From contig QPMI01000417.1 of the NCBI GenBank assembly GCA_004431415.1, positions 1 through 64,000 of the forward strand: a stretch of 64,000 bases of DNA, written 5' to 3'. Under the pieces are notes generated by a model. The model searched no databases. It saw only the letters and a program-made list of their open reading frames with translations, and was not told the DNA's origin. Position 1 is the stretch's first letter. Each line of letters begins with the position of its first letter. Position numbers and translations under genes: made by a program. Shown piece by piece: positions 3,802 through 43,700 of this stretch. The DNA comes from Cyanophora paradoxa CCMP329 (lineage: Eukaryota; Plantae; Glaucophyta).

Positions 3802-6800
3802 TTAATCGCTGTCATCAAGCACAATGACTTCTGGAGCCTTGGTTGCAACTGCAGCTGCTGTTGCAGCCGGCGGCGGCGCTGCCGGCGGCTGGCCATGGCC
3901 CGTTTGTGTCCGGTTCCGACGCTTGACGTGAGAAATGCCGCCGCAGCGGCCGCGAACAGAGGGGCCGCCGGTGTGCGACCCGCGTGCGCTGCCGCTGGAT
4001 CCGTTCGGTGCTCCTGACGTGCCGACGTCGGACTCCTTGCCCCCCCCGCTGCTGCTGGACGGGCCGGCACCGCCACCGGCACCGGAGCTGCCGCCGGGGG
4101 CGGGGGCGGGGCCCCCGCTCGAGCTCGCGGCCGCCGTGCCGGCGGTCGTTCGAGGCCGCCTCTCCTCCCAGGTCCCTTCGACGTCTGAGCTGCTCGGCCC
4201 GGCTCGCTTCTTCTCCGCGCCGCTGAGGCCTGGGACCCGAACGCTGCTGCTGCTGCCGCTGGAGGGGCCGGCGCCGGCTGCAGGGCTCCCGTTCCCGCTG
4301 GCGAGCTCATTGCTTAAGCTTCTGCCGGGGACTGCCTTTCCCTTCTCCGCCCTCGCCCGCTTCGAATCCGGGGGCTGCTCGGCGGGGCCCTCCGAGGGAT
4401 GCTTGCCGCGCGCGACTAGTACTGGCCCCGCGGGCTCATGATCACCGATCGACACGCCGTCGTCGTCCCGCCCGCGACCGTCGCCGCCTTCCTCGAGCCC
4501 TTCCGCCTCGTCTGAAGAGTCGGCGTCGTTCTGCACGCAGGGCGAGCGCGTCGGGTCAGGTCAGAGGCAGAGCCTGAAATCGAACAGCGGGCGCATAGCT
4601 GCGCACTGCGGTTGCCTCGGCCTGAGCGAGGGCGGCGTTGGCAGAGCTGGAGACGGAGGGCGCGGCCTCCTCCTCCTCCTCCTCCTCATCGCCCTCGCCG
4701 CCGCCGTCTTCAAGGCCCGCGCCGGCGAGCGCGGCTCGCCCGTCCCGTCCCAGCTTCTCCCGCACTTTCTCCCGCAGTTTGGCCCTGCTTACGGTCATGA
4801 ATTCGGTTCGCGACCATCAGTGTTCGCTCCATCGATATGCGCATGCGCGCGCACCGGCTCTGGTCGTCCGCATACACGTCAGCGATGGTCTTGACGAAGG
4901 CTGCGATTTGATCCAGGGCGCCGCTCCACGCCGCCTCGGCCGCCGCGAAGTCCAAGTTTGCCAGCACCTGCCGCCCTGGATAAGGGGCCATGTCCGGCAG
5001 AGGATAAGGGGAGGCTAAAGGACGAACCTCCGAGCAGAAATTCTCGATAGTGTTCTGGAAAGCGCGGAGGACCTGGAAGTTTGCATGTGCGCGGACGTTT
5101 GTTAACCAGCGATTACTTCAGTTTAGATCGCGCTTGAGATTGACGTGCGCACGTCGCCAAGCTTCTTGCCGCAGCTCACCGCAAAGCTTTGAAAGGAGTT
5201 TTGTATGGCGCCCCTGGTCTCTGCGATTTGCGACCTGCGTGATGCAAAGAACCTTCGGCAATGCAAGCACGACGCACGGTCATAGCCCGTCTTCGCGATC
5301 TCTGGTGCTGCGCTGGCGACCTTTGCCTTCGCAGCGGGCCACTCTGAACTCTGCCGTGCAGGTCAGAACCAGCCAAAATTAAACCGAAAGAGCTAGACCG
5401 GGGCTCCTTGAACGCGCCCTGGCATCGACGCCCTTTACTGCGCGCTTTAGAGCCGGTTCCATCTCCTTCTCCGCGCTGACGGGGCGACTCAGACGGCGCT
5501 GACGCCGACAGGGCTCGAGCGCGCAGACGCGTACCCCGTAAAGGCAAAGTCACATAGATTCCCGGCGCCGAGCGACTGGATGAATTCCACCGTCGCCCGC
5601 ACGCGCTGGTCCAGCTCCCTGCGAGAGAAATTCGGACGGAGCGCGAAATTCGGAAATTCGTCGCGGTTCGGGAGCGCTCGCCTGCTTAGAAAGCAGAGGA
5701 CGATGCCGAGGACCTTGAAGGCCTCCTCGCTGCCCGGGCGGCCCTCCCAGGACGGGGGCATCTCCTTCCGCATTCCCAGCAGCCTGATCTTGATCATGTC
5801 GATTCGCTGCGAGCGTGAACCCCGATCGGGAGCTGAGAACAGATGAAAGCTCAAGCCTGCGACGTGAGAGGAAGGGTCACCTCTCCGAAAAGGCTCCGGC
5901 GAAGGCTCGTCTCCTCCAGAAACTTGTGCATCTCGACTCGCAGCTGCAGCGCCCCATCTGCACGAGAGATGAGCGACCTAAGGCTTTGAGGAAGAGTATT
6001 GTACAACAAATTTATTCATATAATGTAATTATAAAATTTACAGGTTCGTAAATATACGTATATGCCGGCGCCGCACCGTAAAGGGGCTCGAGGGCGCTCT
6101 TGCCGACCTCTCCAGGGACAAGCGGCTCCTTCGCCACCGCAGCGAAGAAGCCGGCAACGCGATAGCCGAAAGCTTTCTGCAGCCTCATCTGCACGGACCT
6201 CGTTACACTACGCACCCGCTTAGCTTATGGGTGGGGCTGCATGGACGCACGGCAGTCTGCGCGGCGGCGCAGTTGGGGATTTGTCGGCCCAACGTTCTGT
6301 CCACGAGGCCCGTGCCTTTCTTGCCCGCCTCGCGCCAGTTCTCGAGCCCGCTAGTCTCTTGCAGCGCGGTCCGCGTTTTCCTCAGCGACTTCGCGCACTG
6401 CTTCAGGTGATCCTCCAGCAGCTTGCGCGCGTCCGGCGACAGCCGCTTGACCTCCATAACCTGATTCCGAATGAGCGAGATGCGGGGGCATAAGCGACTC
6501 GGTTTTGGAGAAGGACGTACCAGGCGGTTGGACGTGGCGTAGAAGCAGAGTACTCCCCCGAGGGTCTCCAGAGAGATGGGGAGCAGCTGGGCGCGCAGGC
6601 TCGCCGCCCGCACATCCCGCAGCTGGTGCAGCAGCTGCTTGAAGTCGGGCCGCTCGCCCGATCCCTTCCGACTCCAGTTCGGCCTCGCGAAAATCGGCGC
6701 AAACCGGACGCGGCGCATCCTGCCGGAAGACGCACGAGCACCGTGAGAATCAAGCGCGAGCGCGAGCAAGTGAGGACAGAGTCTCTCGAGAGCGCGCGCG

Positions 6801-9800
6801 CACGTTCGCTCGACGGTCTCGACACGGGCCGGCTCGGCCTCGTTCTGCAGCGCGATGGCGACGACGTCTTGGAGCTGCGTGCGGAACTGGCGCTTCTTGG
6901 CCACCTCCATGGACTTCAAGAACTTCTCGGCGGAGGGAATGTCGTCGCCCCGCCCGAAGTCGCCGTCCTTGACCAGCAGAATCTGCGTAGAAGCGTAAAG
7001 AAGCTTAAGCCGCGGCTGCGGGGCGCCCGTCCCGTTCCCACCTGGATGCGCGAGCTCGCGGCTATGATCGGGGCGAAGACATCGGGGACGACCTCCCTCG
7101 GCAGGCTGTCCTCGTCTTTGCTCGAGCAGAGCTGCGCATGCGCGTAAACGTTCATGGCCTGAGTGGACGGCGGCACAATCCCGGGCGCCCCGTGCGATCG
7201 TGGACGAACCATGAGGACGGCATCGATGCTGCGCTCGCCCTCTCGGAACGCCGACATGACGATTCCGTTGTGCGCGTGTCCCGGCTCGCTCTGCAGCCCC
7301 GGCAGATCTTTCTGCAGCGCGCGCGTAGTATTTGTGGTCAGCGAGATGCAGGCATGCAGGACACGCGACGGCTGGAGCTCACGAAGCGAAAGTTGTGCAG
7401 GTCGGTGGAGGGCAAATGTAGGCGGATCGCGCGCAGCATGCCCCAGTGCGAGACGGCGCCGTCCTGCAGGGCGTCAGATCTGCTAGACTATAGCTAGGAA
7501 CGAATTGAGATGCAAGTACCTTGCGCTCCGTCGCATGAATGATGAGCATGCGGCGTACCTGCACGTGCATACAATCGGTCGCAACTAGAGGGGCGCGGCC
7601 ACAGCGGACCGGCTCTGCGGGGCGGGTCTGCACCTCTTTCCTGATGTCCTCAGCGGTGTTCGCGAAGATGCGGTGGCGCGTCGTCCGCCCCAGAAGCGGC
7701 TTGTACACCTCTAGAATCTCAATTTGGTCCTCGCTGCGATTGCGAGAGCTTCAGGCATGGGCGCGCTCGAGCTCGAGCCAGGTCGCAGAGAGCAGCACCT
7801 GTACTTCTCCAGCTCGTGCACCGCATCGTTCTGCTCGTCTTCTTCGTACAAGGCGTCGTCGCTGGGCATGTCCTCTTTGTCTCCACCGCCAGCATCCGCG
7901 CCGAGGCCCGTGCACGCCTTGACCCTGCATTACGCCTCGCACGCTCAGCGTCGATCGATATCGCGATCGCTATCGGACGAAGTAAATATTTATGAATCGA
8001 GCGGACCAGCCTAGGCTTGAAACGCTATGCTTGAAGGCTTCTCGCTGTGCAAGCGGCTCAGAACAAGTAGGGGCAGCTGCGACTGCGGATTCGAAGCCGG
8101 CAGCACCTGCTCGGAAGGCAATGCCTGCACGGCCCCGAGATCGCGCCGGACCCTTTCGAAGTGGGGCTCGAGCTGCGCGGAATCCGAATCAAGCTTAAGG
8201 GGCGGAATCTCGAACTGAGAATTAGAGGGGCGGCGCCTCGGTGCTGGGGCGCCAGTCGAACTCGAGCATAGGCGACTCGCAGGAAGCCGGGTCGAAGAAG
8301 AGGAGTTCGACGGGGACGGCCGAAGTGGCGCCCAGCGGCTGCACGGCGCGACGCGTAAGATAGCGAAGCCAACATCGAGGCGGGACGGAGGGCCGGGGCG
8401 CCTGCTGGCGCGCCTGCGAGGGGAGGATGTCGCTGTTCCAGCGCGAGTCGCCGCCAAGCTCGCTCCCGCCAAGCGCCGCGTAGATCTCGCCCATGTCTTC
8501 GCTGCAGTCACGGCCCTTCGAGTCGACGACGCCCTCCGGGGGCAGCAGCTCGTGTGTCTGCGAAGCACGTGAGCTCGAGTACCCCGGTGTACATGTACAG
8601 CCAGGCAGGGGATCAGAGGCGCACGATGACTGTGGAGGGGGACGGCTTGACGCTGTGGGCGAGTCGGCACTGCTTGGCGTAGTCGGCGAAGACGCCGCGG
8701 GGCGGCATGAGCTCCACGATGAGGCTGGACAGCGTCGTTGACTTGCCGGCCTTCGACGGCGCCAGCTGCGGAGGCGTCGGCGGCGGGCGGCATGTGCGCG
8801 GGACTGACATTGCCGCGGCGCGCACGAGGTAAATGGAGGTCGTTTGGACTGTGGTCAGGCTCCTGTCGCGTTCAGCTATCTCCTGCTGGACCTTCGGAAG
8901 GGTTTATGATCAGGCGGGCTGACATGCGACGGGGTGCTCTAGGCTCAAGGGTGGGGCGGGGGGAAGGTTGGGTTGGGTTGGGTTGGGTTGGGGGGGTTGG
9001 AGGGGGATGAGCCAGGAGCAGGAGCAGGGAGAAGGGGGAGGCGGGAAAGGAGGGGCGGGGAGGGGGGGGGGGAAGGGGGGGGGCGAGCCAGGAGCAGGAG
9101 CAGGGGAGAGGGGGAGGCGAGGGGGGAGAGCGGGGGGCGGGGGACGGGGGAGGGAGGGGGGGGGGGAGCCAGGAGCAGGAGCAGGGAGGAGGGGGATGCG
9201 ATAGGATGGGGGCGAGAGGGAGGGGAAGGGCCGGGGGAGGAGGGGGGGGGCGGAGGGGGGGGGGGAGGGGCAGGGGGAGGGTGGAGGTGGGAAAACGCAA
9301 GGGAAAGGAGGTCGGTGGGTGGGGGACGAATGAGATGTACAGCAGGGAAAGGCAAATGGGAAAGAAATGGGGGACTAAGGGAAACGCGACATCGCGGGGA
9401 AAGGGAAAGAGGGGGGCAGCGGCGGGTGGGGGAACGGGGGAAGGGGGGGGCAGCGGCGGGTGGGAGGACAAGGCGGGTGGGAGGACAGTGGGAACCTGCT
9501 CAATGTGGGCATCTGAGATGAGAAGGGGGCGCTTAGGGTGCGTCCCTCCGGGCGCGGCCTTCCAGCGGTCCCGGGAGACCTCCTCCAGCCGGCATCGAGC
9601 GAGTTCCAGCTCGCTCCTGATCTTCGCCATGAGCTCGATCGAGCGCGGGTCGTCTCCAGGGGAGCCCGAGCGCCCCGCCGCGCAAATCGTCGGCCGCCGG
9701 CCTACGAAGAGCGAACAATAAGCCAGGAGCAGAGGCGGGGGGGACGGGTGGGGGGGGTGCGGGCCTGAAGAGGTGCCGGGAATCTCTGGCCGGACGAGAA

Positions 9801-11227
9801 GCCAGCGGACAGCGCGCGTGGTGCTTCGGGGCTCGTCGCGCCCTATCCAGACGTGTACGTCGTCCTTCCTTTCCTCGCAGGGGATCTTGAAATCGCGGAA
9901 GAAGTCCAAATGGTGGATATGGCTGCGAGACGGCAGCTCAGCGGGGTACACATACATCGGCAGGAGGGCGACGTACCCCTTCTTTCTGTTTTCGTAGATG
10001 AGGTGCGGTCTGAGCCGCGCCCCCGGCTCCCGTCCGATAGCAAAGAGCGTGAACTGGCAAAGATCAGAACGCCGTACCCCCCGTCTGGGTGCGGGGTACG
10101 CGAAACGCACGATGTCTCTCTCGAGCGAGGTCGGAGGCATCTCCTGGAAGCTCTGGACGAGTTCCTCGTCCTTCGCGGTGGTGGAAAACCTGGGTACGAC
10201 CGCCGTAAGACGCGCCGGTACCCCCCACAGCCCTACACGTGCGCACGGCACAATCTTGCAGATGGCAGATGCGAATTCACGCGGTGCCCGCTCCACCTGA
10301 GCCTCGACGAACTCTCCGAGCCTGCGCTGCGCAGACAGTGGCGCTCTGCAGCGATCGCGCTCGTGAGTGAGGAGGGCGCGAGAGACGAGCGGAAGAAAGC
10401 CGCATCTCACCTTGCAGCGGCGCCGATGGCGCCCTCCAGAGAAGTGTGTTCCTCGCAGACGAAGCGGAGACCAAAGAGGAAGGTGCTGACGCCGTTCCCG
10501 CGCTTCGCGGCCTTCGATTCCGCGGCCTCTGAGACCGCTTGCGGGGCGTACTCGGCGAACGCGCGCTCGGCTGGGCTCGGCTCGCGCCCCTGCAAGCGGC
10601 TGAGGCGGCGCGCAGCGCTCAAGAACGATAGCGAGGGAACCTGGATTGGGCACAACACGGCCATCGACTTGGCGATGGTCAGCGCCCGCTCGCGCGAGGC
10701 GAACGCGAAGGTGTTCGCGGCTGGCGCCGAAGAGCCCGACGGCGCGGTCCCAGCCTTGCCCGCGCGCTTTTCCTTGTTCTTCATCAACTCCTTTTCCACC
10801 TCTGAGGCCCAAGCGATCCCTTTACGACGCGCAAGTTCGGGGCGCGCGCGCGCGCGGCATGCTCACCCGCTTTCATCTTCGCGAAAGCGATGCATCCTTT
10901 CTTTTTCTTGAAGTGAAAGCTGCCGCGAGCAAACAGCGCATCCTCCGTCGGTTGCTTCCAGATCTCGCAGAGCTCTCGGAGAGAGACAGTGATGCGCCTG
11001 CGGCGGCTGACGACAGGCTGGCGCGGATCGAGAAGCTCGAAGCAGTCCTCGCTGACCAGGACGACGCGAACATCCTCCTTGCCGGTCCAGGGGAACGTAA
11101 AGTAATCGCCCGGCTCTAGCTGAGCGTGCCGGTAGACATCCCGGAAGCAGAGCGCCGAGCTCGCGCTGGCGCTGGCGCTGGCGCTAGCTGCTGGGCTCTT
11201 CGAGGGCGGCCCTGCTCTTCTTGACAT
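3802..11227 (-). CDS. Gene A: large multi-exon dynamin-superfamily GTPase (SLIP-GC/NUGGC-like) with RAMA-like N-terminus and C-terminal SIM-like motif
   Basis: ATG at 11227 (MSRRAGPP). Spliced Walker A TSIYL|LAPSKAGKSTTLSSLI (~8720-8765). G2 region ILPSQ|PLGATSAVPVEL. HWGMLRAIRLHLPSTDLHNFRF|KDLPGL gives G3 DxPG (~7294-7308). Helical region follows; last exon ends EVIVLDDSD-TAA at 3802. Confidence 0.75.
8950..9495. repeat. G-rich intron of gene A with three copies of gagccaggagcaggagcaggg among long G runs
   Basis: Copies at ~9008, ~9085 and ~9166, with a partial copy at ~9721 in the neighbouring intron; a (GGGTT)n run at ~8965-9000. Confidence 0.8.
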
Positions 11228-11666
11228 ACTTTGGAGCTTGAGCGTGCTCTACTTACGGTCTAGAAGCGCGTGGAGCTGCGCCCGCGAACTTCAGGCTCGC
11301 ACTCAACGTTCGCTTGGGGGGAGAACGCACTGTCTGGGCGTCCAGTGACATACGCCATCGCCTCCGAGCGCAAGGTCGCAAGCGCGAGCTTCGCCCGCTC
11401 GAGCTCCGGCCCGCTGGCTGAATCGAATTCTAATGGCTGGGGTCGCAGCTGTGCTACTGCCTTATAGAGCGCACTGCGTACTTCCGCGATGCTTCAGCGA
11501 TGCACGAAAGCGCTCAGCGATGCGAATGCTTGAAGCACGGTACCCCCCCACAATCGCCTGCCACGGCGCCTGGTGACCGGTGGGCGCACGCGAGCCCGCC
11601 GCATAGCTTCAGCAAAGAAGAGCCATCGGCCGGCGCTGAACGCGGGGAACGGCGGGAACGCCGGGA
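11228..11666. promoter_or_regulatory. Putative bidirectional promoter of the GTPase pair
   Basis: ~440 bp or less separates the divergent start codons. Inferred from geometry only. Confidence 0.45.
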
Positions 11667-13379
11667 ATGGTCCTGCCCGCCGTCGAGGTGCGGCCTTCGC
11701 ACCTCGTGAAGAAGAGGCTGCTTGAGATTGGCGACAAGGTGCGGCATCCTCCGCTTCAGCTTCCGTTCGAATCCAGCGCATGCGCAAGCGGCTCTAACGC
11801 TGTAGCTCGAGCCCGCGTGTGCCTAGCTATAGCGTCTATCATGCCGGGACGCATAGCGTGCCGTACAGCCCTGACGAATGCACACGCGCGCGGCCTGCAG
11901 GTTTGCGCGGAGGTCGATGGCATCGCAGATCTGAGCGACGACGCGGTGGCCGTCGTCTCGAGAGAAGCGAATATGGTCGTTTTGAGCTGGAAGGACTCCG
12001 CGGGCCAGCTCGCCGTCGGGGGAGTGAAGGCGCGTTTCCCGTTCTGATCTCGGACATCTCATCTCGAGCTCGCGTGGGCGCAGCGCTCACTCTCTCCGCC
12101 GCAGAACTTTGCGATGCAGCGGGGCGCCGATCTCTCGAGGCCCTGGCAGTCCGTGAAACTCGTGCGCACGGGCGAGACTCTGGACGCGCTGCGAACCCGC
12201 TACGTCGCGCTGGAGCAGCAGCGGGAGCAGCAGCAGGCGGCGGCGGCGGCAGCGGCGGCGGGAGCTTCGGGAGCCCTGGGCTCGCAGGCGCCCGCAGGCG
12301 AGGGCGCCTCGGGGTCCCTTAGCATCGTCGTCGCGGGCCCCTCCGCCGGCAGCGGGACGCCTCTACCCTCCCCGCCGCCCTCTGGCAAGGTACCCCCCCA
12401 CCCCGCCCCCCCCCCCCTTCGCTATCGCTTTCGCCGTTGCTGATGTTGCCCTCGCGCAGTCCGGCTTCAACGTAGCCCTCAAAGCCGGGAGCTACCAGAC
12501 CCAGGTACCCCCCTGCCCCTCCCCCTCCCCCTCCTCACTTCCTCCCCCCTCCCCCACCCCCACTCGGAGGAAGCCCACTCGCTCCCCCGCAGCCGCTGAG
12601 GCTACCGCCGCTGGCGCCGGACGAGGCGGAGTTCGCGAAAAAGCTGGAGGAGGCGATCTGGGAGCGGAAGAGGCGGGGGGGTACAGTCAGCGGCGTCGCC
12701 CAGCTCTGCACGCAGCTCCGCGGCGTCTCGGTCCACTTTCTTTCCACCGCTGAGAAGAACGTCTGCCCCGCCATCGCCCTCGCCATATGGTGCGCACCGC
12801 GCACCCGCGTGAGCGTACCCCCGCCGGTCTCACGTACCCCCCGCAGGCGAAAGCTGGACAAGAAAGAGGACCTGCGGTCGTTCTGCATCCACTCGCTCTC
12901 CAGGGAGCGCGAGAAGCACATGGAGAGCCTGAGGAAGCTCGGCCTGGACGAGCGGAGACCGGCATCCGTCGTGGGCATACTCGACAGGCACGTGCACGCC
13001 GGCGGCAGCGGAAACACCTCTGGGATCGCGGAGGCCAGCAGGTACCCCACCCCACCCGGCCGCGCGCGCCCCGCTTCGACGAGGCGTCATGTTCACGACC
13101 CCCGTCTGCAGGCTCTTCTGCTCTATTCTTAGCAACACGCACGCGCTCCGGATATCCCTTGCGAAGGTGCCGGCCCGCCCTGCCCGCGCGCGTCTTCCAC
13201 AGCCTCGCCTATAAATTGCGCAGATCGACAAGAAAGGGCTGGACGTCGAGACCTTCGGGGAGGACGGCGGCAGCGGCGGCGAGCAGCGCCGCAGCGTCCT
13301 CATCGCCTACGAGTACGGCATCCGCAACATCACGTTCTACGCCATCGTACCCTCCCGCTGTGCGACGCGCCTACCCCCC

Positions 13380-13413
<34 letters not shown>

Positions 13414-16400
13414 TCATCCGCGCGCTGCGAGCAGACGCGACCTTCCACAGCTCGCCCTGGCAGCTGCTACGGGTCTTCCAGAACTCTCTGCGTGCGCCTT
13501 CGTATAATTTCGGCCCAAATTCAAACCGCCTCCTGCCCCTCGCCCATCCGATTTGATCCGAGCTGCAGGTACGACCCCGGGACTTCTCTGCGGCGAGTCT
13601 CGCCCTGTCTTTCTCCAGGCGAGTCTCTCTCACCCAGGCCGTGTTTTCTTCCCCCCCCCTCCCCCCCCCCCCTTCCCGGCCCCCCGGCCCTCTGCCCCGC
13701 TTTTCCGTCCTTCTTCACGCCTTTCTAGGGTTGCTGACGCCCCAAGCGCAGTTCAACCCCGTCCCGGACTCCCGGCGGTGCCTGTGGAACGTGGACGAGG
13801 CAGGCTCAACCCTCCAGCGCTTGGAGTCCGGACTCGAAGACGTGCGTGCGGGGGCGGGCGCGCGCACTCCGCCCTCGATCCCACAGTCAACCCCCGCAGT
13901 TCCAAGAGAGGGTCCGCGACCCGCTGGCAGGGAGCCGTCGCTTCGTCGTGCAGCTCATCCTCGACCTCGTCTCTCTGGTCAAGAGGCTCGACGCCGTCCG
14001 CTTAGCCCGCAGCCAGGATGGCGCCGCGCAGGTGCGCGCTCTCGCTTCCACTCGATGCCTGGCTCCCCATGGACTCATAAGACCGCCTGACGACAGGTGA
14101 CCCTCGCCGGAAACCACATCAAGGAGGTGCCTACCCCGCGTTCGAGTTCTCCCTGGCTCATTCCTCACTTTCGCCCCTTCCGCAGCTCCTCCTTCGCCTG
14201 CAGCAGCGCTACGTCGAGTTCTGGAACGCGATCCAGTGGAACGTGGCCGTCGTGGGGTACACCGGCGCCGGTGCGCGCGCGCCCCCGACCCCGCTCGTCG
14301 TTGAAGCCTAACACGACCGCAGGCAAGTCCACGCTGCTCACGTCGGTCGTCCGCGACGGGCTCCCGACTCCAGAGGAGTTCCACGCGCTCATCGCGGGCC
14401 ATCCGCACCTGCTGGCGGACAAGGCTTCGTACCAGGCGCGGCCGCGCGGCTTTAGCTCATCTTTGTCCACCTCGCTATGAAGTTCGCGAACCAGGCCTTA
14501 CGTTCGAGTCTCCGCTCCGCGCAGAAGTACCTGCTCGTGCAGGGGCCCCCCCAGCTGGAGGGCAACCGCCTCGACAGCATCGTGAGGGGGCACGCGCACT
14601 TCGTTCTACTACTCGGCGTCAGCCCCCGCGCGCGCCGCTGATCCGCGCCCGCGCGCAGGCTCGTCGGCGCGCTGCGCGCCAGGGCCGGCGCTGAGGTTAT
14701 GGACCACGTGCACAAAGGGGACCTGCTCCCCGCGTTTTCGGCGGGAGCCACGTCGAGCGTGCCCCCGCGCATGGCGCGCCCTTCCCTGTTGAGCTTAAGT
14801 CTTCATGTTTACATCGCTTACTGTTGCTTTTCGCAGGTTTACAGTGTCGTTCCTTATCTTCGAATCGTCTTCAAGAGTCTCGAGGACTTCACAAAGGTAT
14901 CGTTTCTGCATATTTCTTCTCTCCGATCTGCCTTGGCCTCTTCATAGTTGACGCGCTCGCCTCCAGATTACGAAGGAGGCTTCCGCCTACCTGGAAATGT
15001 TCCACAGTAAGGAGACCCTGACGTCGAGGCAGCGCATGACGATCGAGGAGGCCCTGACCATGTCCGCCACCGGGAAATTCAGTTGTCATCTTCTAGTTCT
15101 AGAGCTCAAGCGTTGCGTTCGCAGGCTCGGCATGGAGGACCCCGTCGAGGGCGCGCGGGCCGAGGTGGCCGAGGACGCCCCCGACACGCTGGACGACCAC
15201 CTGTGGCGCATCCCGTGCGCCCCTGCAGCGGCCCTTTAAATTTCGCGCTTGGTTCGAGCTGCTTGGCTCGCCACCCGAGCGCTGACGTCGTTCGTTCGGT
15301 CCAGGCGGGGGTCGCTGGAGCTGCCCGAGGGCTTCAAGGACTTCAAGGAGGTGCTCGGCTGCACCGTCGACGTCGTCGTGTGGGGGCCCCGGCTGGAGGA
15401 CGCGGTGCACCTCGTTCACTCCCGATGCCGGCGCCGCGCGTCTGTTGGCCTTGACCTAAGCCGAAGCCGCGCAGATCCGGGCCATCCACGAGCACCTCGT
15501 CCTGCTGGCGACGCGCGGCAAGTGGTCCTTCTGGGGCCTCGTCGCCGCGACGGAGATCGGCCTGCCCTCGGAGAACCTGCGCCACCAGGAGATCGTGCGC
15601 CATATTAAATTCACGTTTTGCCACCCGCATCACTGCTGATCACGATTCCATCCCGTGTCAGATGGACTGCACGGGCATGAGCGGCTCGGACCGCATCCGC
15701 CACCACATCGGCACCACGGCGTTTCTGGAGGCGGGCACGTCGGGCCCGCACCTCGGCGCGCGCGCGGCAATGTGGGAGGCGCAGGGGAGCGCGCAGGTCC
15801 GTATACGTAGACGCCACCGCGCATCTCGCGATCGCGAAATCCGCCTACCACCAAAGGCCGATCGCGAGCCGCGCGCGCACAGCACGGGACCGACAAGGTT
15901 GTCGCGGCGGCCATCTCGACGGCCGAGCGGAGGCCGCCGCCGGCACTGGCGGCCATCCCCGCCGAGCAAGTACACGGCGACTTCGACGTGCTCGTCCACG
16001 TCATCCAGCGCAACTCCATCCACGTGGTGCGCTAAGAATTCGACTCGGCCGCCGCAGAGCTGCCGCTGTTTGACCGTTTTTTCGCGTCGCCAGGCGTGCA
16101 AGGAGGGGCTGCGGCCCGCCGTTCGCCGGCTGCTGGAGAGGCCGGAGGAGTGCAAGGCGCGCGCGGCTGCCGAGCGCGCGGCCGCGGCTGACGAGGCCGC
16201 GCGCGCCAGGTGATCGTGGTGGGGGACGTCGAGCGCGACATGGAGGGCGCGACAGAGGGCGCCGCCAGGACGCACTTCATAAACACCATCAAGACCGAGT
16301 GGCAGGTTCGCTTAGCAAATGATTTTTTACAGTTGCAATTAGAACATACATATGCATCATATGGATCGTCAGATTCCTTTGTCGTTGGTTTCTAATTCCG

Positions 16401-19288
16401 AATTTCGTCTGCAGGAAGGGCTCGTCAAGAGTGTGAACTCCGAGATGGGTGGCGACTCGAATGCGCAGGTTGTACGTTGGAGAAGGTCGGTTCTAAACAG
16501 CTATGCGGACGTGCAGGAACTCTTGACTAAACGAACGCGCAGGATGAAGGGAGCCAAAACAATCGAAGCGGCGTTCGTCAAGGCACGCCCCGATCACTAT
16601 CGGAAGGGCAAAGGCGAACGGCCCGACGTCGCGGTAAGATACCAGCTGCAGTACTCGTCAGATCTAGAACGTTGTCGGGCCAAGTTCTGAGCCTTGCCGC
16701 ACATGCACATGCACAGATGCTTGTCAACAAGATCCAAGCGCACCGCGAACAGGTGGGCTTCCCTAAGCCGTCGACTCCGGCGTCTGCCTCTCCTCCGAGG
16801 TCGCACATGCTTGGCTGACGTCGACTCCGATCTGGCCCTCTCCTCAGATCGTGGGGCGCCGCCTGGCCACGGTCGCCTGTAATACTCTGACGCGGGCCCT
16901 CCTTCCCTGCTGGGAGCGCATCTACATCGTGCGCGCGCGTCTTCCGCCTTTGGTTTCGACGATCGCGACAAAAAATAATGCAAATAGAGGCATAATATGA
17001 ACTAATCCACTATAGTAGTATAGTAAACGGGTATGATAACGATCATATAAAATACCAACAAGCAAAAATAAGGCAGGACTAACAATACCATGACTTATCA
17101 TTACCATTATAGAACCTTCTATTGACTGCCGAGCTTATCGGAATGCGGGCATCCAGATCGCCGAGATCCAGGGGCACTCGGCGGAGGAGAAGGCGGCGGT
17201 GTTCAACGCGCTGGAGGAGAAGGCCCGGCAGCTGGTGCAGCTCGCGCTGAGGCTCGACGCCCGCATCGACCGCAAGGTGGTGAAGGCAGCCGCGGCCAGC
17301 GCGGTCAGCGCTTTCTTATTTCTAGATCTCTTTTCCGCCTCTCTCCACGCGTGAAATCAAACGTGCAGGGCGCCGAGGCGACCGACGAGGACGACAGGTG
17401 CAGCGCGTTCAGCGGCAGCAGCGGCCGGCACGACGAGGACGAGGACGGGGAGGACTACCAGGACCTCGAGGAGGACGACGACGACATGGCCGAGGAAGAG
17501 GACGGCGCCGGCGCCGACCGCGACGCGGCGTCGTCTTCGCAGACGATCGAAGCGAACTTCGACGACAAGAAGCGGCCGCGGCTGAGCGAGGCCCTGCGCT
17601 GCGTTCTGAAGGAAGCCGTGAACCCGTGCCTCAAGAAGTGCACTGGGAAGCGCTTCCTTGCAGAGATCGTGCGCGGAGCCTCGGCCCCGCCTCGCCCGCA
17701 CCGCCTCTCCTAGGCCTGCCCATGACCTCTGCACTCCGCGCCGCGGCCGCCCGCAGGAAGCGATTCTCCTCTCGGGGGTCACGAACAAGATGCAGGCACT
17801 GAACAGGGCCTTGAAGAAGACGCCGGCGAGCTCGAGCAAGGTGGCGAAGGCGCTCGTCGGGCCCATGCTGGTCTGCTCGTCGGCCTTAATTCGTCCAAAG
17901 TTTCTCTGCCCGTGCCAATGTTCTCGCAGATCGCTATGCCAGTGCAGCTGAGGGAGAAACTGAATGAGCACATCGGGAAGCGGGCGCGGCCTCCTACCCC
18001 TATTCACCTTCTATGCTGCCGGCCTCCCACCGCTTTCTAATCGCCTCGACCGCAGTTCTTCGATTCTCTTTTCAGTGAACTCGAGGAGAAACACCTCTTC
18101 CGCAAGGCCCCCACCCCCGCCTCGGAGTCAGACTCGGGGCGCTCGCGCACCACCGCCCTCCGCGACGCCATCATCGACTCCGAATTTCGGTCCGAATTTC
18201 GGAAAAATCCGCGCCACGGCCGCGCGCGCGCGCGCGCTGCCTCGATCTGATCCCGGCGCGCGCGCAGGGACGGGCGCTCGCAGCTGCGCGAGAGGCAGGA
18301 CGGCGTTCGCGAGCGCCTCGCCGGCTTTGTGCCCAGTTTGGTGACGGAGCTCGACGAGATGGCGTGCACTGCGATCTTGCGCTTCAAATTTCCCGTTACC
18401 CAAGCTGAGAGCTCGACCGCAGCTCGACGAGCGCATTGGCAATATCGAAGAGAAAATCAAGGGGAAGGCGCGTGCGATGCGTGTGAATCCCTTTCGTCGG
18501 GCCGCTTGGAAAACTAACGTCGCATTTCCACAGCCTCTTCAGAAGAAACTGGACTTCCTGGCGAAGCAGGCACGGCCGATCGCAGTCGCGATCAAGGACA
18601 GAATCCGGAACCGAATGGAGGTGCGCGGGGCCCATTAACGAGGCCCCCATACTCTGCTTCCATATATGTCTCGGCTAATCACGCTTAATTTTCCCGCAGG
18701 TGTTTCGACATGAAGTCGCCATGGTGCAGAACACGATACCGCAGGTTTGCTCTCACCTAGCTGTATGTATCATGCCTAGCTGAGATTACACACCCGCGCC
18801 CGCCCCGCCCCGCCCCGCCCGCAGTTCCTGATGGACGGTGCGGAGAGCCTGCGGCGGTTCCAGGCGGAGGACCTGGCGAAGATGAGCACGGAGGCGGCGA
18901 AGAAGGCGCTGGCGGAGGCGTCCGGCGTCGCCGTCGCCGCGATGAGGGAGGCCGTCGAGCGCTTCGGCGGCCGCCCCGAGTGGATGTGCGCCCATCCAAC
19001 GACTTCGACGACTTCTAACTACGTATTAATCTTTGTGTATCGCAGGGCCGAGCTGAGGAGGGCCGTCAAGGACCTTCCCGAGCGGCTGCGGGCGGAGCTG
19101 GGGCGCGGGGTACCATCGCTCTTTAGAGTCGACGGGCCGGAGCCGGACCCTCCGACCTCTGCGGCCGGGCCCAGCGGAGCCGCGGACGCGGCCGCGGCGC
19201 CTGTCCAGGCTCCTGCGCCGTCGTCGTCGCAGCAGGCGAAGGAGAAGGCGAAGGGGCCAGCCACGTCGTCTTCGCCGCCGCCTCCGCC

Positions 19289-19331
<43 letters not shown>

Positions 19332-20718
19332 CAACAACAGAAGCAGAAGCGGCCGCGCGAAGGTGGAGCGGCGGGCGAGGAGCACCGGCCGCGGGGGCGG
19401 CCGATGCCCGCGCCCGCGCCCGCTGCCGCCAGCCAGAGAGAGCCCGGCCCTTCGAGCGGAGCGGGGGGCACGAGCGCCGCGGCCGCAGCCGAAGCGAGCC
19501 AGCGACGAGCGCCCTCCGGGTCCCCAACCTCGTCGCGATCGCGCCCCGCCGCCGGCGGTGGCGCCAGTGGCTCCTCCAGCGGCCAACGATCGTCGGAGCC
19601 GCCGCCGATCTTCGTCCCGCCGGCAGCAGCAGCTGCTGCAGGCGGATCAGGCGGAAAGAGGCCGGCCCCGGCCCCGGCGCAGCAGCCATCGGCGTCAGCG
19701 CCCGCCCCGTCTGCAGGCGCGGGGCGAAGGCCGGCCAACAGCCGCCAGGCGCCCGAAGCAGCATGCGCAGCTCTAGCGACCTCGCGGCCGTCCGCAGCCG
19801 CAGCCGCCCAGCAGCTGCCGCGCACGAGCTCTTCCGGATCTGCAGGACGAGCCTCCGCATCTCCTGCAAACTCCCCGCCACCGGTCCCAGCCGCTGCGGC
19901 CTCCGGAAGCGGCCTTAGAACGCGCGTTGCGGCCGCCCCGGCGGCGACCCAGCCAGGCTCCTCTTCTTCCCCCCCAGCCGACCCCGCCGAGCGCCCGCCG
20001 CCGCACAGGGGACCGGTCCCCGAGGTCCTCCCCGTACCCCGGCGGAACCCACCGCCCGGCGCCCCCCGCAGCAGCGGCGGCGGCGCCGCAGGGGGGAAGT
20101 CTTCCCGGGCTTCCGCCCCCGCCTCCTCCTCCGCCGCCGCCGACGCCGCGGCCCCCGCGTCGACGTCGACGTCGACGTCGGGCTCAGCGGGCGCCGGCGC
20201 GCCGCGGCGGGTCGGATCTCCGCCCGCGCAGCAGCCTTCGGCGGGCGGGAGCGAGGTGGCCACGCCTTCGCCATCCTCCGCGAAGCGGAAGCGCCGAATC
20301 GAGGACGACTACGACGAGGCCGACGCGGCGGATGAGGAGGCCGCGAGGCGCCGCTCGGCCGGCGGCGGCGGCGGTGGCGGGCCGAGCCAGAGCCCGGGCG
20401 CGGGCCGGGGGCCCCTGGCTCCAAGGCCAGGACGGCGCCGGCCGCCCCGTCCGCCCCCAGCGGCGGCGGTCCGAGCTCGAGTCAGCGCCAAGGTCCCCTC
20501 CGGCCACGGCCGCGGCCGCGGGCTCGGGATCCGCACCGAGGCCCCGGGCGCCGGCGCCGGCGCCGGCGGCGGCCCCGCCCGCGGACCGCGAGCGGGAGCA
20601 GCTGGAGAGAGCGCTGGAGGAGTCGAAGCGGGAGGCGCGGGCGCGCGAGGAGCGGGAGCGCCGCGAGGAGGAGCGCCTGCTGCAGGAGGCCCTCCGCCGC
20701 TCCCTCGCAGAGCGCTAG
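11667..20718 (+). CDS. Gene B: second SLIP-GC/NUGGC-like dynamin-superfamily GTPase with RAMA-like N-terminus, long low-complexity tail and two UIM-like helices
   Basis: Walker A NVAVVGYTGAG|KSTLLTSVV split by an intron (14240-14350). G2 region DLLPAFSAGATSSVP (~14720-14765). FWGLVAATEIGLPSENLRHQEI|MDCTG gives a G3 variant (~15530-15673). Ends EQLERALEESKRE...ERLLQEALRRSLAER-stop at 20718; reaching this needs frameshift(s) at G/C runs near 20405-20500. Start may be at 11500. Confidence 0.75.
16968..17128 (-). pseudogene. nad4: NUMT: mitochondrial nad4 (NuoM) fragment inside an intron of gene B
   Basis: Abrupt AT-rich 160-bp island translating to QSIEGSIMVMISHGIVSPALFLLVGILYDRYHTRLLYYYSGLVHIMPLFALFF, the conserved SHG...LF..VG.LYDR..TR motif of ND4. 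Lies between donor gtgcgc (16929) and acceptor cag (17156). Confidence 0.92.
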
Positions 20719-39200: not shown

Positions 39201-40694
39201 CGGACACATAGGCGTTCTAAGGTCGTTGGCCTTTTTGGATACATATAAAAGGCGCACAGGCCGGGCCCCGGGTCCTCCAGAACGGCAGCCCGGTGCAGCG
39301 CCGTCTCGTCCGCGTTCGTCCTCCCGTCCACGTCGGCGCCTAATTTATAAACGGGCTAAGATCAGCGAAAGCTTATACAACCATGAGGAAGGTCATCAGA
39401 GACGAAGAGCACAGATCGGACCGGCGTCGACGAGCATGCGGAGGAGGGCCATGTCGACCTTCGGGGGGGCCGCGTCCGGGTCCGCGCCCTGCGGGATCAG
39501 CAGGAGATCCCGAGCGGTCAGCCGCGGAGATGCAGATCTAGAGCGATCAGCCGCGCAGAGAGCATGCGGGCTCAATTCGTCGATCCGAATAAATTTTATG
39601 CGAATGCCTAAAATTGCCCCTGATCAAGCGTCCCAGGTTAAGTTGCCCCTGATCAAGCGTCCTAGGGTCAAGCGTCCAAGGGGTAAGGGGGGGGGACGGG
39701 GGGGGGGGGGGAAAGGGGTAAGGGGGGTAAGGGGGGGGGGGGGGGGGGCGCCTGGGGAGCGAGGGCCTCCATGAGGGTGGTGATGTACGTGGCAGACCGG
39801 TCCCCCGCGCTCGCCCCCGCCTCCAGCAGGAGCCTGCAGGGATAAAAAGCGGAGAGATCAGATCTCGGGTGGATTAAAATATAGTGGGGGCTCCAGATCT
39901 AGATGTAGATCTAGATCTGACCGGACGAGCTCGGCGTCGCCGGTGCGGCAGGCGTGAAGGATGGGCGTGTAGCCGCCCGAGCCGCCCGCCGAGTGCACGT
40001 CCGCCCCCATCGACAGGAGGAGCCTGGCCATGGCCGCGCGAGCGAAGGGGCACAGTGAGCACGAGATCGAGGTAATCGGTAAACATCGACGCAAGAGCTC
40101 GCAAACAAGGCACACGCTTTGCTCTCTTCGTTTGGCAAGCTAAGCTAAGCGCAGTGCGTAGCGCGCACCGGACCGTCGCCTTGTCTCCGACATCGCTGGC
40201 GGTGCGCAGGGATTTGTCCAGGATCTCCTGCGAGGGCTTGAAGCCGCCCTCCTGCAGAGCCCTGCGGGCCGGCGCCGCGCGTGAGCCCCTTTATATAATT
40301 AGAGAGAAGCCCTCAGAGATAAAAGCCGTCAGAGAGAAAAGCCCTTTCTCTGACATCGGCCACTGGGTCGTACTTGATTTGGGGCTCAGATCTAGATCTA
40401 GATCTAGTTCGGATTCCGAACCCGATGCACTCGGCGGCGGCCTCGCCGCAGGTCGTCGCGGCCTCGAAGGCCGTGCCGCCCTGCTTGTCCACGACGCCGG
40501 CGTCGGCCCCCTTCGCCAGCAGCGCCCTGCGAAGGGAGCTTATAATTAGTGATCCGATCTGGGGTTTATAAATAGAGGCTTATAATAGAGGGGGTCTTAT
40601 AATAGAAGCTTAAGGGGCTTATAATAACGTTTACTGGGGTTTAGCGATCTTATAAAAGGGGTGCTTATAATAGATTGGGGGCGCCGGCAGGGCC

Positions 40695-40726
<32 letters not shown>

Positions 40727-43700
40727 GGGCCCGGAGAGGGGGGGGGGGGGGGGGGGGGGAGGGGGGGGGGGGGGGCACCGGACGAGGAGCGCGTCGCCCA
40801 CTCCACAGGCGAACATGAGCGGAGTCTTGCCCGAGCCGTCCACCGCATTCACGTCTGCCCGGAGTGAAGCTTAAGGCGCATGTTCAGACAAAACGTGTCG
40901 AGGGTCCAATGCATCGATCGGAATTAAAAAACGCATGCGCATGCGCGCGCACCCGCCCCATTCTCGATCAGCCATCTGTCGGGTCGGGGTCGGCCCCGGG
41001 CCCGGGGCGCGCGCGCGTCAGCAGAAGATGTCGCGCCGGTAGCCTAGTCCTAGATCTAGATCTGGGTCCCGGGAACGGAAGGGGAAGGGGTGCGGCGCGG
41101 GCGGGCGCACGCGGAGATCTCACGGCGGGGGCCCTTCTCGGGGCACCCCAGGGCGAAGTGCAGCGGCGTCCTCGTCCCGTAGTTCCTGCGAAATGCGGCA
41201 TAATATAAGGTAATACGGCTCGAACTCCGTTATATTGTGGTTGTATTGAGAGTTTCGTAATTTTAAGCTCATTCGACCGCGCCGGGCGCGCGCGGCGTGC
41301 CGGGCGCGCGCGGCATGCATTTGCGCACCTTCGGTCCGCCCCCTTGGGGATCGCCTGCTCGTAGAACTCCTTGTTCGTTATGTCGCTCCCCTTGCCCACG
41401 AGGTACCTGCGGGGTCGTCCGATTTAATGCAGGTTCTCGTGATCATATCTAGATCTAGATATTGACGCTCGCTCGATCTCAGCCAATCTAAGCCCGCGTC
41501 CTTTCTCTTCCTAATAAAACATCGGGCAAGCCGACTTGGGGATCATAACTAGGGGCCCGGCCGCGTTTGGCGCGCCGGGGGTGCAAGGGGGGAATCGGGA
41601 TCTAATGAAAGAGGCCCGGTCGGCGTGCTCGGCCGGCACACGCGGTTCTGCAATATAAGCTCGATATAAGCTCGATATAAGCGCAGCAAGAGAGTACGGT
41701 CTAGATCTGGCCGGCCGGGCGTGCTCGGCTGCGATCAGCTGCAGCGGCGCAGGCAGCAACGCAAGCAGTTTCTAGGCGGAAATCTAGAGGAGACGTTGAC
41801 AGGTAGAGAGAAGTGGTTCCATGCAGAACCGCGCAATGAATTCGAAGAGCAAGGCGTACGCGACGAACTGCGTGGCCGGAAGCCGAAATCTAGAGGAGAC
41901 AGCTAGGGAGAACTGGTTCCATGCAGAACCGCGCAAGGAATTCGAAGACCGGAGTTAGAGAGAAGTTAGTTTTCCCCTCGAAAACCACTTTTTCCCCTCG
42001 AATTCGACGCTCGAAAGTCGAGAGCTGACCGGTCCACCGAGCCAATCGGAAGGCGAATAACCAACATTTTCGTTGCAGACTGGCCCTCGAAAACGGCCTC
42101 ATAGAAAAATTTTGGCTGAAGCGAGGGAACGGGAAGCAAGGGGGCCCCCTTCCCCCCTTGCAATTAGATCTGTATATCTGATCTGGACCGAAGGTTCGCA
42201 CTTGACGATCTCGAAGAGCCCCTTCTGGGCGGCGTGCTCGACGGGCCGCCAGCCGCCCTCGAACCGCGCCTCCGTATCCGCCCCCCGCTCCACCAGCAGC
42301 CTGGGGTACGTATAAAGGAGCGCGGGGAAACAGCCCCGGAGGGGTACGCGCACTTCACGACCTCGAGATCGCCGGCGTCCGCGGCGTAGAACAGCGCCCG
42401 GAGGCCCCTGCGAACGCCGCAAGAGGGACGAAAGTGAGCTTGATTAGATTGAATTTGAAAGCTCAAGCTTCACGCTCGCACCTCCCCGTGTAGGGACCCA
42501 GCTCCTTACAGAACGCTGAAGTGCGGGGATCGTGAGAGGGGCGGGAAAGGGGGCGGGAAGGAAAGGGGGGATGGGGGGGTGGGGGGAGGGGAGGGGAGGG
42601 AGGTGGGTGGGTGGGGGGGGAGGGGGGGGGGGGGGCGCAGGCGCGCGGAAAAGGGCGCGGGAAGAAAGGGGGGGGGGGGGGGGGGGGGGGGACGTGGAGG
42701 AGAGGAGGGGAGAGAAAGGAGGAGAGCAAAGGGCGGATAAGAGGATCCGGAAGGGTAATTAAATTAAAGGGCGAACGAAGCTTAAGCGGCGCACCGTTCA
42801 CGTCGGCGCCGCGGTCGAGGAGGATTCGGACGCACGCCTCGCTCGGCGTCTCCCGCGCCGCTGTCCGTAAGGCATGTCGACGTCAGAATCAAGCTTTATG
42901 ATCATGATCACGGCAATTTCGAATATTGATATCGATTAATACACAACCGCACACAGCTGTAAACAGCTAGAAGCTGATACTTATATAACAGAGCCATTCA
43001 ACAGATATATACAGACAGCTGTACACAGCTAGAAACGAATATCGAGTAAAATACACGCACCCAGGTGGAGGGGGGTGAACGCGGCCGCGTCGCGCGCGTC
43101 GACCTGGGCCCTTATTAGTCTTCCCGCCCTTCGACCTTATTAGTTAGAAAACTTATTGGTTAGTTACACGCATTAGTATTAGTTAGAAACTAATGAGTTA
43201 GTATGCAAGAGGTCTAAAAGCGTCGACCTGGGCGCCGGCTTCGCAGAGGGCGGCGAGGCAGTCCGCCTTCCCCGTGCTGGCGGCCCAGTGGAGCGCCGTC
43301 TTCTGCTCCCCGTCCCGCGCCTCGAGCTCCGCGCCCCTCTCCAGAAGGAACTGCGCGCGCGCAAATTAAATCCGACGGGATCAAATCTTCGTCGAAGCCG
43401 GCGGAGATCTAGATCGCGAACGAGGGCTCGTGGAAAGGCGGGGCCGACCTTCACGACGGGCGCGTGCCCACGCCCGGCTGCGTAGATGAGCGCCGCCCGC
43501 TGCGCGTCGCAGCGCTCGTCGACCTGCGCCCCGTGCTCCAGGAGCCACCTGCGGCGGCGCAGGCGGACAGGTGCGCGTACGCGCGCGTCAGTTGCAAGTC
43601 GCGCACGTATGTACATGTATATGCGGGATGGATCGACGCGAACGCGGGCTCACCGCGCCGCGTCGAGCTGCCCGAAACGGGCCGCCTCGATGAAGGGAGT

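Follow-up and report, generated by a model that had tools for sequence, protein, structure and literature searches.

The closest described counterparts of the locus considered here are the bacterial dynamin-like proteins, the interferon-induced large GTPases and the vertebrate nuclear GTPase SLIP-GC. Bacterial dynamin-like proteins frequently occur as adjacent paralog pairs. Mx and GBP are large GTPases which act by nucleotide-dependent assembly. SLIP-GC, according to a published summary, is a GTPase of the nucleus and supports the stability of the B-cell genome (PMC12107551). Two large genes, here called A and B, lie side by side in a 64,000-nucleotide (nt) stretch of contig QPMI01000417.1 (the window) from the glaucophyte Cyanophora paradoxa CCMP329, and their common core recalls dynamin-type GTPases in its motifs. 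The whole is best explained, with the balance leaning moderately in favor, by a divergent, intron-rich pair of paralogs with a dynamin-type core.

A divergent pair of spliced genes

Genes A and B are head-to-head neighbors transcribed away from each other, and the transcripts of both are spliced. In the window, the guanine-cytosine (GC) content is ~0.6-0.75 and the reading frames are interrupted by many short introns; for the genome as a whole, the reported values are 67.6% GC and ~9 introns in each gene, of 86 bp on average, and they come with a caution that C. paradoxa gene models require manual curation (PMC6704402). The start codon of gene A is annotated at 11351, and an alternative ATG at 11227 opens a single exon (MSRRAG...). 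Depending on which of them is used, the distance to the ATG of gene B at 11667 is 315 bp or 439 bp, the latter in agreement with the ~440 bp proposed in a first-pass annotation, which was made from the sequence alone. An RNA contig of gene B extends ~43 nt upstream of 11600. Because the genome is dense, head-to-head neighbors are common in it (PMC6704402).

Gene A has a public protein model, P0001, which can be placed exactly on the minus strand, from 11351 down to 3805, followed by a stop codon at 3802-3804. Its expression and splicing are supported indirectly, by word content: in 11 runs from three studies, taken to be RNA, the share of the sampled 31-letter words of 6200-9000 that is recovered ranges from 0.35 to 0.44, and a share of 0.43 is expected if precisely the 14 P0001 exons in this interval are present in spliced form. 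The highest value thus matches the expected one (0.44 vs 0.43). Upstream of the region encoding the P-loop, the intron at 8886-9579 (minus strand) is ~700-800 nt long, compared to the genome mean of 86, and is almost wholly C/T-rich, with proline-codon-like low-complexity repeats.

The model of gene B was assembled from RNA contigs, splice consensus, frame and depth, with no public protein as a reference. Contigs from two runs of different studies (X1 and X5) list 15 splice joints in 11600-17599, all of them GT-AG or GC-AG, and so bear out the expectation that transcripts join these exons. The joints 16156/16210 and 16752/16848 were deduced from loose ends of contigs, and a 45-nt micro-exon (12460-12504) is the only solution for a contig in which 44 letters are unaligned. 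For the remaining joints, consensus splice sites were weighed together with frame and depth; the depth of one 3606-nt contig, multiplied by the exonic fraction in each 200-nt bin, predicted known exons within 1 nt. The exons in 13752-14185 were placed manually, with splice sites, frames and depth bins as the guide. From 13752 to its end the chain is free of stop codons and uses GT-AG or GC-AG sites only, and the GC content at third codon positions (GC3) of gene B exons in the coding frame is 0.85-1.0.

The gene B model excludes the repeat-masked interval 13347-13751 and leaves the exon structure after ~19000 provisional. There, the coding frame traced by GC3 switches several times before it closes in frame with the stop codon at 20716-20718; the frame switches imply that the last ~1.7 kb of the gene holds more introns than were modeled. 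Two contigs meet inside the exon 12847-13041 without bridging it, and gene B is likely one transcript.

Several features of the gene B transcripts merit a record of their own. All modeled introns are GT-AG or GC-AG. The GC-AG kind, with donors of the GCGCG[CGT] type, is frequent (6/36 modeled introns, three of them confirmed by RNA); examples are 12030-12104, 14774-14836 and 16157-16209, and the gene A intron 8413-8339 is of the same type. The 70-nt intron 13042-13111 is spliced in run X5 and unspliced in a contig from run X1, in which 13026-13164 are contiguous; the X1 read-through may represent intron retention or unspliced RNA/DNA. In run X5, one RNA contig leaves gene B at 14453 and another enters it at 17179, each with at least 255 letters that are absent from the window; these contigs may be chimeric assemblies or transcripts of partly similar paralogs.

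An ancient common core

The DNA of the two gene regions shows no similarity in a blastn search (word size 11, E ≤ 1e-3). The proteins are related. BLASTP aligns A 496-715 to B at 25% identity (E 1.35e-8) and finds a second, collinear match around ARP...RKG.GERPD (E 5.7e-5). Across the central module the Smith-Waterman score is 165 vs 41 ± 5.5 for 300 shuffled sequences (z 22, or 19 with block shuffles), and, taken separately, G1-G2 has a z score of 5.5 and the G3 region one of 9.5. This similarity is confined to ~A 385-910, the central ~520 residues; in the N-terminal ~370 residues and in the region after A ~960, Smith-Waterman alignments of A and B are no better than those of shuffles, with A 1-385 vs B 1-367 scoring under the shuffle mean. 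The matching architecture ascribed to the pair in the first-pass annotation is therefore a property of the core and does not extend to the N- and C-terminal parts.

Intron positions tell the same story. Two phase-0 introns occupy identical positions in A and B, one directly before x-D-x-x-G and the other directly before the G4-position strand, and a third pair lies within one residue of each other. With ~14 and ~17 introns in the module, ~0.15 exact coincidences are estimated to arise by chance. The A and B cores are homologous and the genes are ancient paralogs. The age of the duplication follows from the ~25% protein identity, the lack of DNA identity and the common intron positions; the latter also imply that the duplicated gene already carried introns. 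The proposal of an ancient duplication that left no nucleotide identity thus stands.

What the two paralogs do together is less certain. The core domain would bind and hydrolyze nucleotide and, by analogy with dynamin-superfamily proteins, could act through nucleotide-dependent dimerization of G domains, in which the partner may be the neighboring paralog. An A-B heterodimer is attractive but unsupported. Its most serious competitor, with a likelihood only slightly short of even, is that A and B are independent paralogs derived from an inverted duplication, each acting alone or as a homo-oligomer, and that sharing of a promoter has no functional meaning. In its favor, A and B have unrelated ends on either side of the core, as might be expected of proteins with different partners or targets, and two small runs (X8 and X14) contain A exons and no B contig except an organelle-like insert that lies within a gene B intron; the latter difference is weak, since contigs cannot measure the expression level. 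Against independence, the duplication is so old that no DNA similarity is left, and still the genes are adjacent and divergent.

Motifs of the putative G domain

Whether or not the paralogs interact, the Walker A, G2 and G3 motifs listed in the first-pass annotation are all present in both genes, and most of them are split by introns (Walker A in B, G2 in A and G3 in both). G1 reads APSKAGKST in A (minus strand, 8762-8736) and GYTGAG/KST in B, where a 52-nt GT-AG intron (14270/14323) interrupts it. In B, the P-loop follows a β strand (VAVVGYTGAGKST); in A, it does so only if the candidate exon 8826-8885, considered below, is real. The G2-like motif of A, DILPSQ/PLGATSAVP, becomes continuous upon removal of the 75-nt GC-AG intron 8413-8339 of P0001. 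The switch-I Thr residue is found in an LP...T..P context in A (DILPSQPLGATSAVP), B (DLLPAFSAGATSSVP) and CrfC (LPNRNRPMTALP), a correspondence at the motif level only. The G3 regions, W-GMLRAIRLHLPSTDLHNFRF/KDLPG in A and W-GLVAATEIGLPSENLRHQEI/MDCTG in B, are cut at the same place by a phase-0 intron, and in both the DxxG follows a hydrophobic strand (NFRFKDLPG and HQEIMDCTG). At the G4 position, after a β-α-β unit, A has LLVKDGD (6979-6959) and B has VIVVGDVE (IVVGDVE at 16213-16233); as had been noted, the canonical [NT]KxD is absent from the expected position in both.

The layout of the core can be summarized as G1 [AG]xxxxGKST, switch-I D-h-LP-x5-GATS-x-VP, G3 DLPG (A) or DCTG (B) and G4 VKDG (A) or VGDV (B). 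Two large insertions separate G1 from G2 and G2 from G3, and beyond the G4 position the segment ARP-x3-RKG-x-GERPD is conserved, with a helical region in addition.

The case for and against a dynamin-type fold

Dynamin, BDLP and mitofusin, unlike Ras-like or translation GTPases, typically have an LP-x5-T-x2-P switch-I context and a DLPG. The motif grammar of A and B fits these three rather than small GTPases, and the spacing from G3 to G4 via a β4-like strand, counted by hand, is 67 residues in P0001 vs 62 in CrfC. Further hints come from ESM-Atlas: all clusters listed for A 385-960 carry Dynamin_N, with scores of 0.93-0.94 and 180-192 of 256 features in common, and the ten best among them, all Dynamin_N, share 186-192 of 256. 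The top two are a chordate Dynamin_N cluster and one named 'Nuclear GTPase SLIP-GC-like'; after them come a fungal DUF7605/dynamin cluster and many bacterial ones, including cyanobacterial. A partial control, A 1-385, gave no usable ESM-Atlas match. From its motifs and neighbors, the A/B core is probably a highly divergent P-loop GTPase of dynamin-superfamily type; its membership in the superfamily is not established.

Other results weigh against this assignment. Pfam returns no family at E ≤ 10, Dynamin_N (PF00350) included, for the whole of P0001 or for nine sub-ranges of it, and nothing for single stop-free open reading frames of A and B exons; DUF7605 (PF24564) is not matched by P0001 740-960, 940-1210 or the entire protein. 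NCBIfam and PADLOC find no relevant family in P0001 and its sub-ranges. A phmmer search of PDB with P0001 gives only weak matches to MlaC, which look like chance. For gene B, the Pfam scans covered its exons one by one, and the joined model was compared locally with P0001 and with a CrfC profile. This profile, built from 106 full-length sequences of E. coli CrfC/RdcA and relatives, at least 61% identical among those listed, is narrow. Searched as a hidden Markov model with all filters off (hmmsearch --max), its match is limited to the P-loop and the bit scores are negative; hhalign against it reports a probability of 38.7% and places G3 and G4 out of register; and segment-wise Smith-Waterman comparison with CrfC is significant for G1 only, G2 and G3-G4 not rising above shuffles. 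AlphaFold2, run on A 385-960 without an alignment, yields a mean predicted local distance difference test (pLDDT) of 34.8; a value of ~35 amounts to no fold evidence and makes a fold search meaningless. The ESM-Atlas statistics are uncalibrated for parts of proteins, and shuffled proteins score at least 0.9 in 4-10% of cases, so that the neighbors are a lead and not proof. The non-canonical G4 in both proteins also counts against a dynamin-type G domain.

One more adverse point depends on the gene model. The residues before the P-loop of P0001 are ...ARCRLEE, with no β1 strand among them, unless the interval 8826-8885 is an exon. These 60 nt are in frame and bounded by canonical splice sites (acceptor CAG, donor GTGCGC), and a 60-nt intron comes after them; their inclusion would place ...TTSIYL (a hydrophobic β1, IYLL) directly before LAPSKAGKST, as in B. 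The interval is probably an exon of gene A that the gene predictor overlooked, to judge from its sequence.

The fit to Dynamin_N/NUGGC claimed in the first-pass annotation consequently survives in part: the G1-G3 motifs and the Dynamin_N neighbors in ESM-Atlas agree with it, and the Pfam, NCBIfam, PADLOC and PDB searches, as well as CrfC beyond the P-loop, do not. The annotation had itself named a failure of profile searches to recover a dynamin-like G domain as evidence against its proposal, and curated profiles indeed recovered none.

These failures are what would be expected if the common core were a lineage-specific P-loop nucleoside triphosphatase outside the dynamin superfamily, i.e., another TRAFAC-class GTPase or an ATPase, that resembles dynamins and SLIP-GC only through generic P-loop features and long helical regions. 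Every profile or sequence test for Dynamin_N or DUF7605 failed, significant similarity to CrfC ends at the P-loop, G4 is not (N/T)KxD, and the caveats on the Atlas scores apply. Yet the ten best Atlas clusters would not all be expected to carry Dynamin_N with so many features in common, nor would a core of another class be expected to combine the LP-x5-T-x2-P context and the DLPG with a CrfC-like interval between G3 and G4; this alternative is considered unlikely. More unlikely still is that one or both proteins are pseudo-GTPases (non-hydrolyzing scaffolds) or products of decaying genes, as the loss of the G4 lysine and aspartate in B (VGDV; VKDG in A), the lack of β1 in the annotated A model and the absence of relatives of its 269-residue exon among 1.84 billion representative proteins might suggest, given that A and B both retain an intact G1, switch-I Thr and G3 DxxG, that the frames are open over at least 36 exons in both genes, which are transcribed and spliced, that a plausible overlooked exon restores β1 in A, and that B exons have the GC3 expected under selection.

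For a divergent GTPase of dynamin type, the degenerate G4 would suggest relaxed base specificity, or a regulatory role for one of the partners.

Outside of the locus, relatives of gene A are elusive. The 269-residue translation of an exon at 6206-7012 (minus strand), used as an HMMER query against the 1.84 billion representatives, finds a single match, P0001 itself (98% identity), and no relatives beyond it; a word search with P0001 1-1100 returned only P0001, for which no encoding contig is recorded, and no relatives of A 395-960 turned up in the contigs of metagenomes and prokaryote genomes that were scanned. Literature searches found nothing on DUF7605 or on a RAMA domain combined with dynamin, and the Cyanophora literature searched discusses only conventional dynamin-related proteins. 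At present, A and B can be described as a well-documented orphan gene pair with a probable, sequence-based fold assignment.

Should the core prove to be a G domain of the dynamin superfamily, the superfamily would extend to a form too divergent for curated profiles to recognize, which combines a degenerate G4, large insertions and lineage-specific architectures and is found in a photosynthetic eukaryote of an early-branching lineage. The divergent pair, if conserved, would offer a tractable test of whether large GTPases of eukaryotes can, like bacterial dynamins, function obligately as pairs of paralogs.

Terminal regions and possible cellular context

The flanks of the core, being unrelated in A and B, suggest different partners; they include long tails of low complexity. 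RAMA (PF18755) has no Pfam match on A 1-130 or on the N-terminal exons of B, for which intron splitting weakens the test. Gene A ends in EVIVLDDSD (3805-3831, minus strand), in which acidic residues and Ser come after a hydrophobic core; by its pattern, this segment presumably resembles a motif for interaction with small ubiquitin-like modifier (SUMO). The closing frame of gene B, 20590-20715 (plus strand), which is the frame with the highest GC3, holds two motifs that resemble ubiquitin-interacting motifs (UIMs), ..EQLERALEESKRE.. and ..EEERLLQEALRRSLAE..; the Pfam UIM_2 match in this last frame is sub-threshold (E 0.28). Basic patches are found in both tails, for example KRKRR in B (frame f2) and KRRNR in A. 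Taken together, the tail features are hints, not evidence, of a nuclear or ubiquitin/SUMO context.

The most ambitious synthesis of these observations is also very improbable. According to it, A and B would constitute a glaucophyte-specific, nucleotide-driven heterodimeric nuclear machine with a degenerate base-specificity pocket and tails that read SUMO (A) and ubiquitin (B). Its targets would be chromatin or foreign DNA, and its role genome stability or cell-autonomous defense; it would be an independent counterpart, in a protist, of large GTPases of the SLIP-GC/Mx type and would belong to a broader family of dynamin-like, DNA-associated proteins in Cyanophora.

Feature coordinates

Table 1. 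Coordinates of genes A and B and of their principal features in the window. A slash marks a splice joint.
Feature	Coordinates	Strand	Remarks
Gene A	3802..11351	-	Public model P0001, 1504 aa (amino acids), ~36 exons; EukProt tig00020564_g11402.t1
Gene A last exon	3805..4530	-	Ser/Gly/Ala-rich low-complexity tail with basic patches; ends EVIVLDDSD (3831-3805)
Gene A exon with conserved ARPNWSRKGSGERPD segment	6518..6718	-	GERPD at 6658-6644
Gene A exon opening with G4-position strand ILLVKDGD	6803..6982	-	Motif at 6979-6959
Gene A pre-G3 exon 7463-7383 (...WGMLRAIRLHLPSTDLHNFRF) and G3 exon 7311-7210 (KDLPG...)	7210..7463	-	
Gene A switch-I/G2-like exons 8557-8414 and 8338-8237	8237..8557	-	DILPSQ/PLGATSAVPVELLF
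Gene A P-loop exon (LAPSKAGKSTTLSSLIVELMPP...)	8625..8765	-	Walker A at 8762-8736
Gene A candidate exon (QEIAERDRSLTTVQTTSIYL)	8826..8885	-	Putative; no counterpart in P0001
Divergent promoter/5' untranslated region common to A and B	11352..11666		11228-11666 if the A ATG is 11227
Gene B	11667..20718	+	At least 38 exons, ~1,700-2,000 aa; stop codon 20716-20718
Gene B P-loop exons 14186-14270 (...WNVAVVGYTGAG) and 14323-14428 (KSTLLTSVV...)	14186..14428	+	Depth bins agree
Gene B switch-I/G2-like exon	14659..14773	+	DLLPAFSAGATSSVP at 14726-14764; followed by an RNA-confirmed GC-AG intron
Gene B pre-G3 exon 15475-15594 (...WSFWGLVAATEIGLPSENLRHQEI) and G3 exon 15662-15796 (MDCTG...)	15475..15796	+	Joint 15594/15662 present in two RNA runs
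Gene B exon opening with G4-position strand VIVVGDVERD	16210..16305	+	Motif at 16213-16233; follows the GC-AG intron 16157-16209
Gene B exon with conserved ARPDHYRKGKGERPD segment	16543..16633	+	GERPD at 16613-16627

Other features of the window

The 228-nt intron 16929-17156 of gene B harbors an AT-rich insert of 161 bp (16968-17128). Its minus strand encodes a fragment of an NADH-dehydrogenase/Mrp-antiporter membrane subunit (Pfam Proton_antipo_M, E 5e-8), and the insert matches abundant AT-rich RNA contigs from three runs, with 3-7 differences over the aligned part; Rfam and tRNA scans of the insert found nothing. It is most likely a fragment of organelle (mitochondrial) DNA in a nuclear intron.

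Elsewhere in the window, coding fragments at 39861-40139 and 40823-40846 (minus strand) contain ankyrin repeats (Pfam Ank, E 3e-4) and are probably part of a multi-exon ankyrin-repeat gene at ~39-41 kb. Cys/His-rich open reading frame pieces at 54390-55236 (plus strand), with weak matches to CEP104_ZnF (E 0.002) and TRAF6_Z2 (E 0.017), probably belong to a zinc-finger gene.

Comparison with known systems

The likeness of A and B to Mx and GBP is the most general: GBPs, too, lack a canonical NKxD. No sequence or profile evidence of kinship between A/B and either of these families was found, and a role of A and B in defense is speculation.

The resemblance to NUGGC/SLIP-GC-like proteins of vertebrates, which carry Dynamin_N and often DUF7605, is closer: both A/B and these GTPases are large proteins with a dynamin-type P-loop GTPase domain, and a cluster of this name is nearest to A 385-960 in ESM-Atlas (0.94, 192/256). 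In contrast to NUGGC/SLIP-GC, however, A and B do not match Pfam Dynamin_N or DUF7605, have a degenerate G4, two large insertions in the G domain and unrelated flanks, and come from a glaucophyte, in which they are arranged as a divergent pair.

Bacterial dynamin-like proteins (CrfC/RdcA, BDLP, DynA, LeoA) differ from A and B in that the latter are spliced eukaryotic genes which diverge from each other instead of running in one direction within an operon, and the match of the CrfC profile to A/B is not significant past the P-loop. CrfC has a G1, KAGKSTT, identical to that of A, and LP-x5-(M/A)T-x2-P, DxPG and a long G2-G3 insertion are also its features; several ESM-Atlas neighbors of A 385-960 are bacterial Dynamin_N clusters; and, like these bacterial proteins, A and B are two adjacent paralogs.

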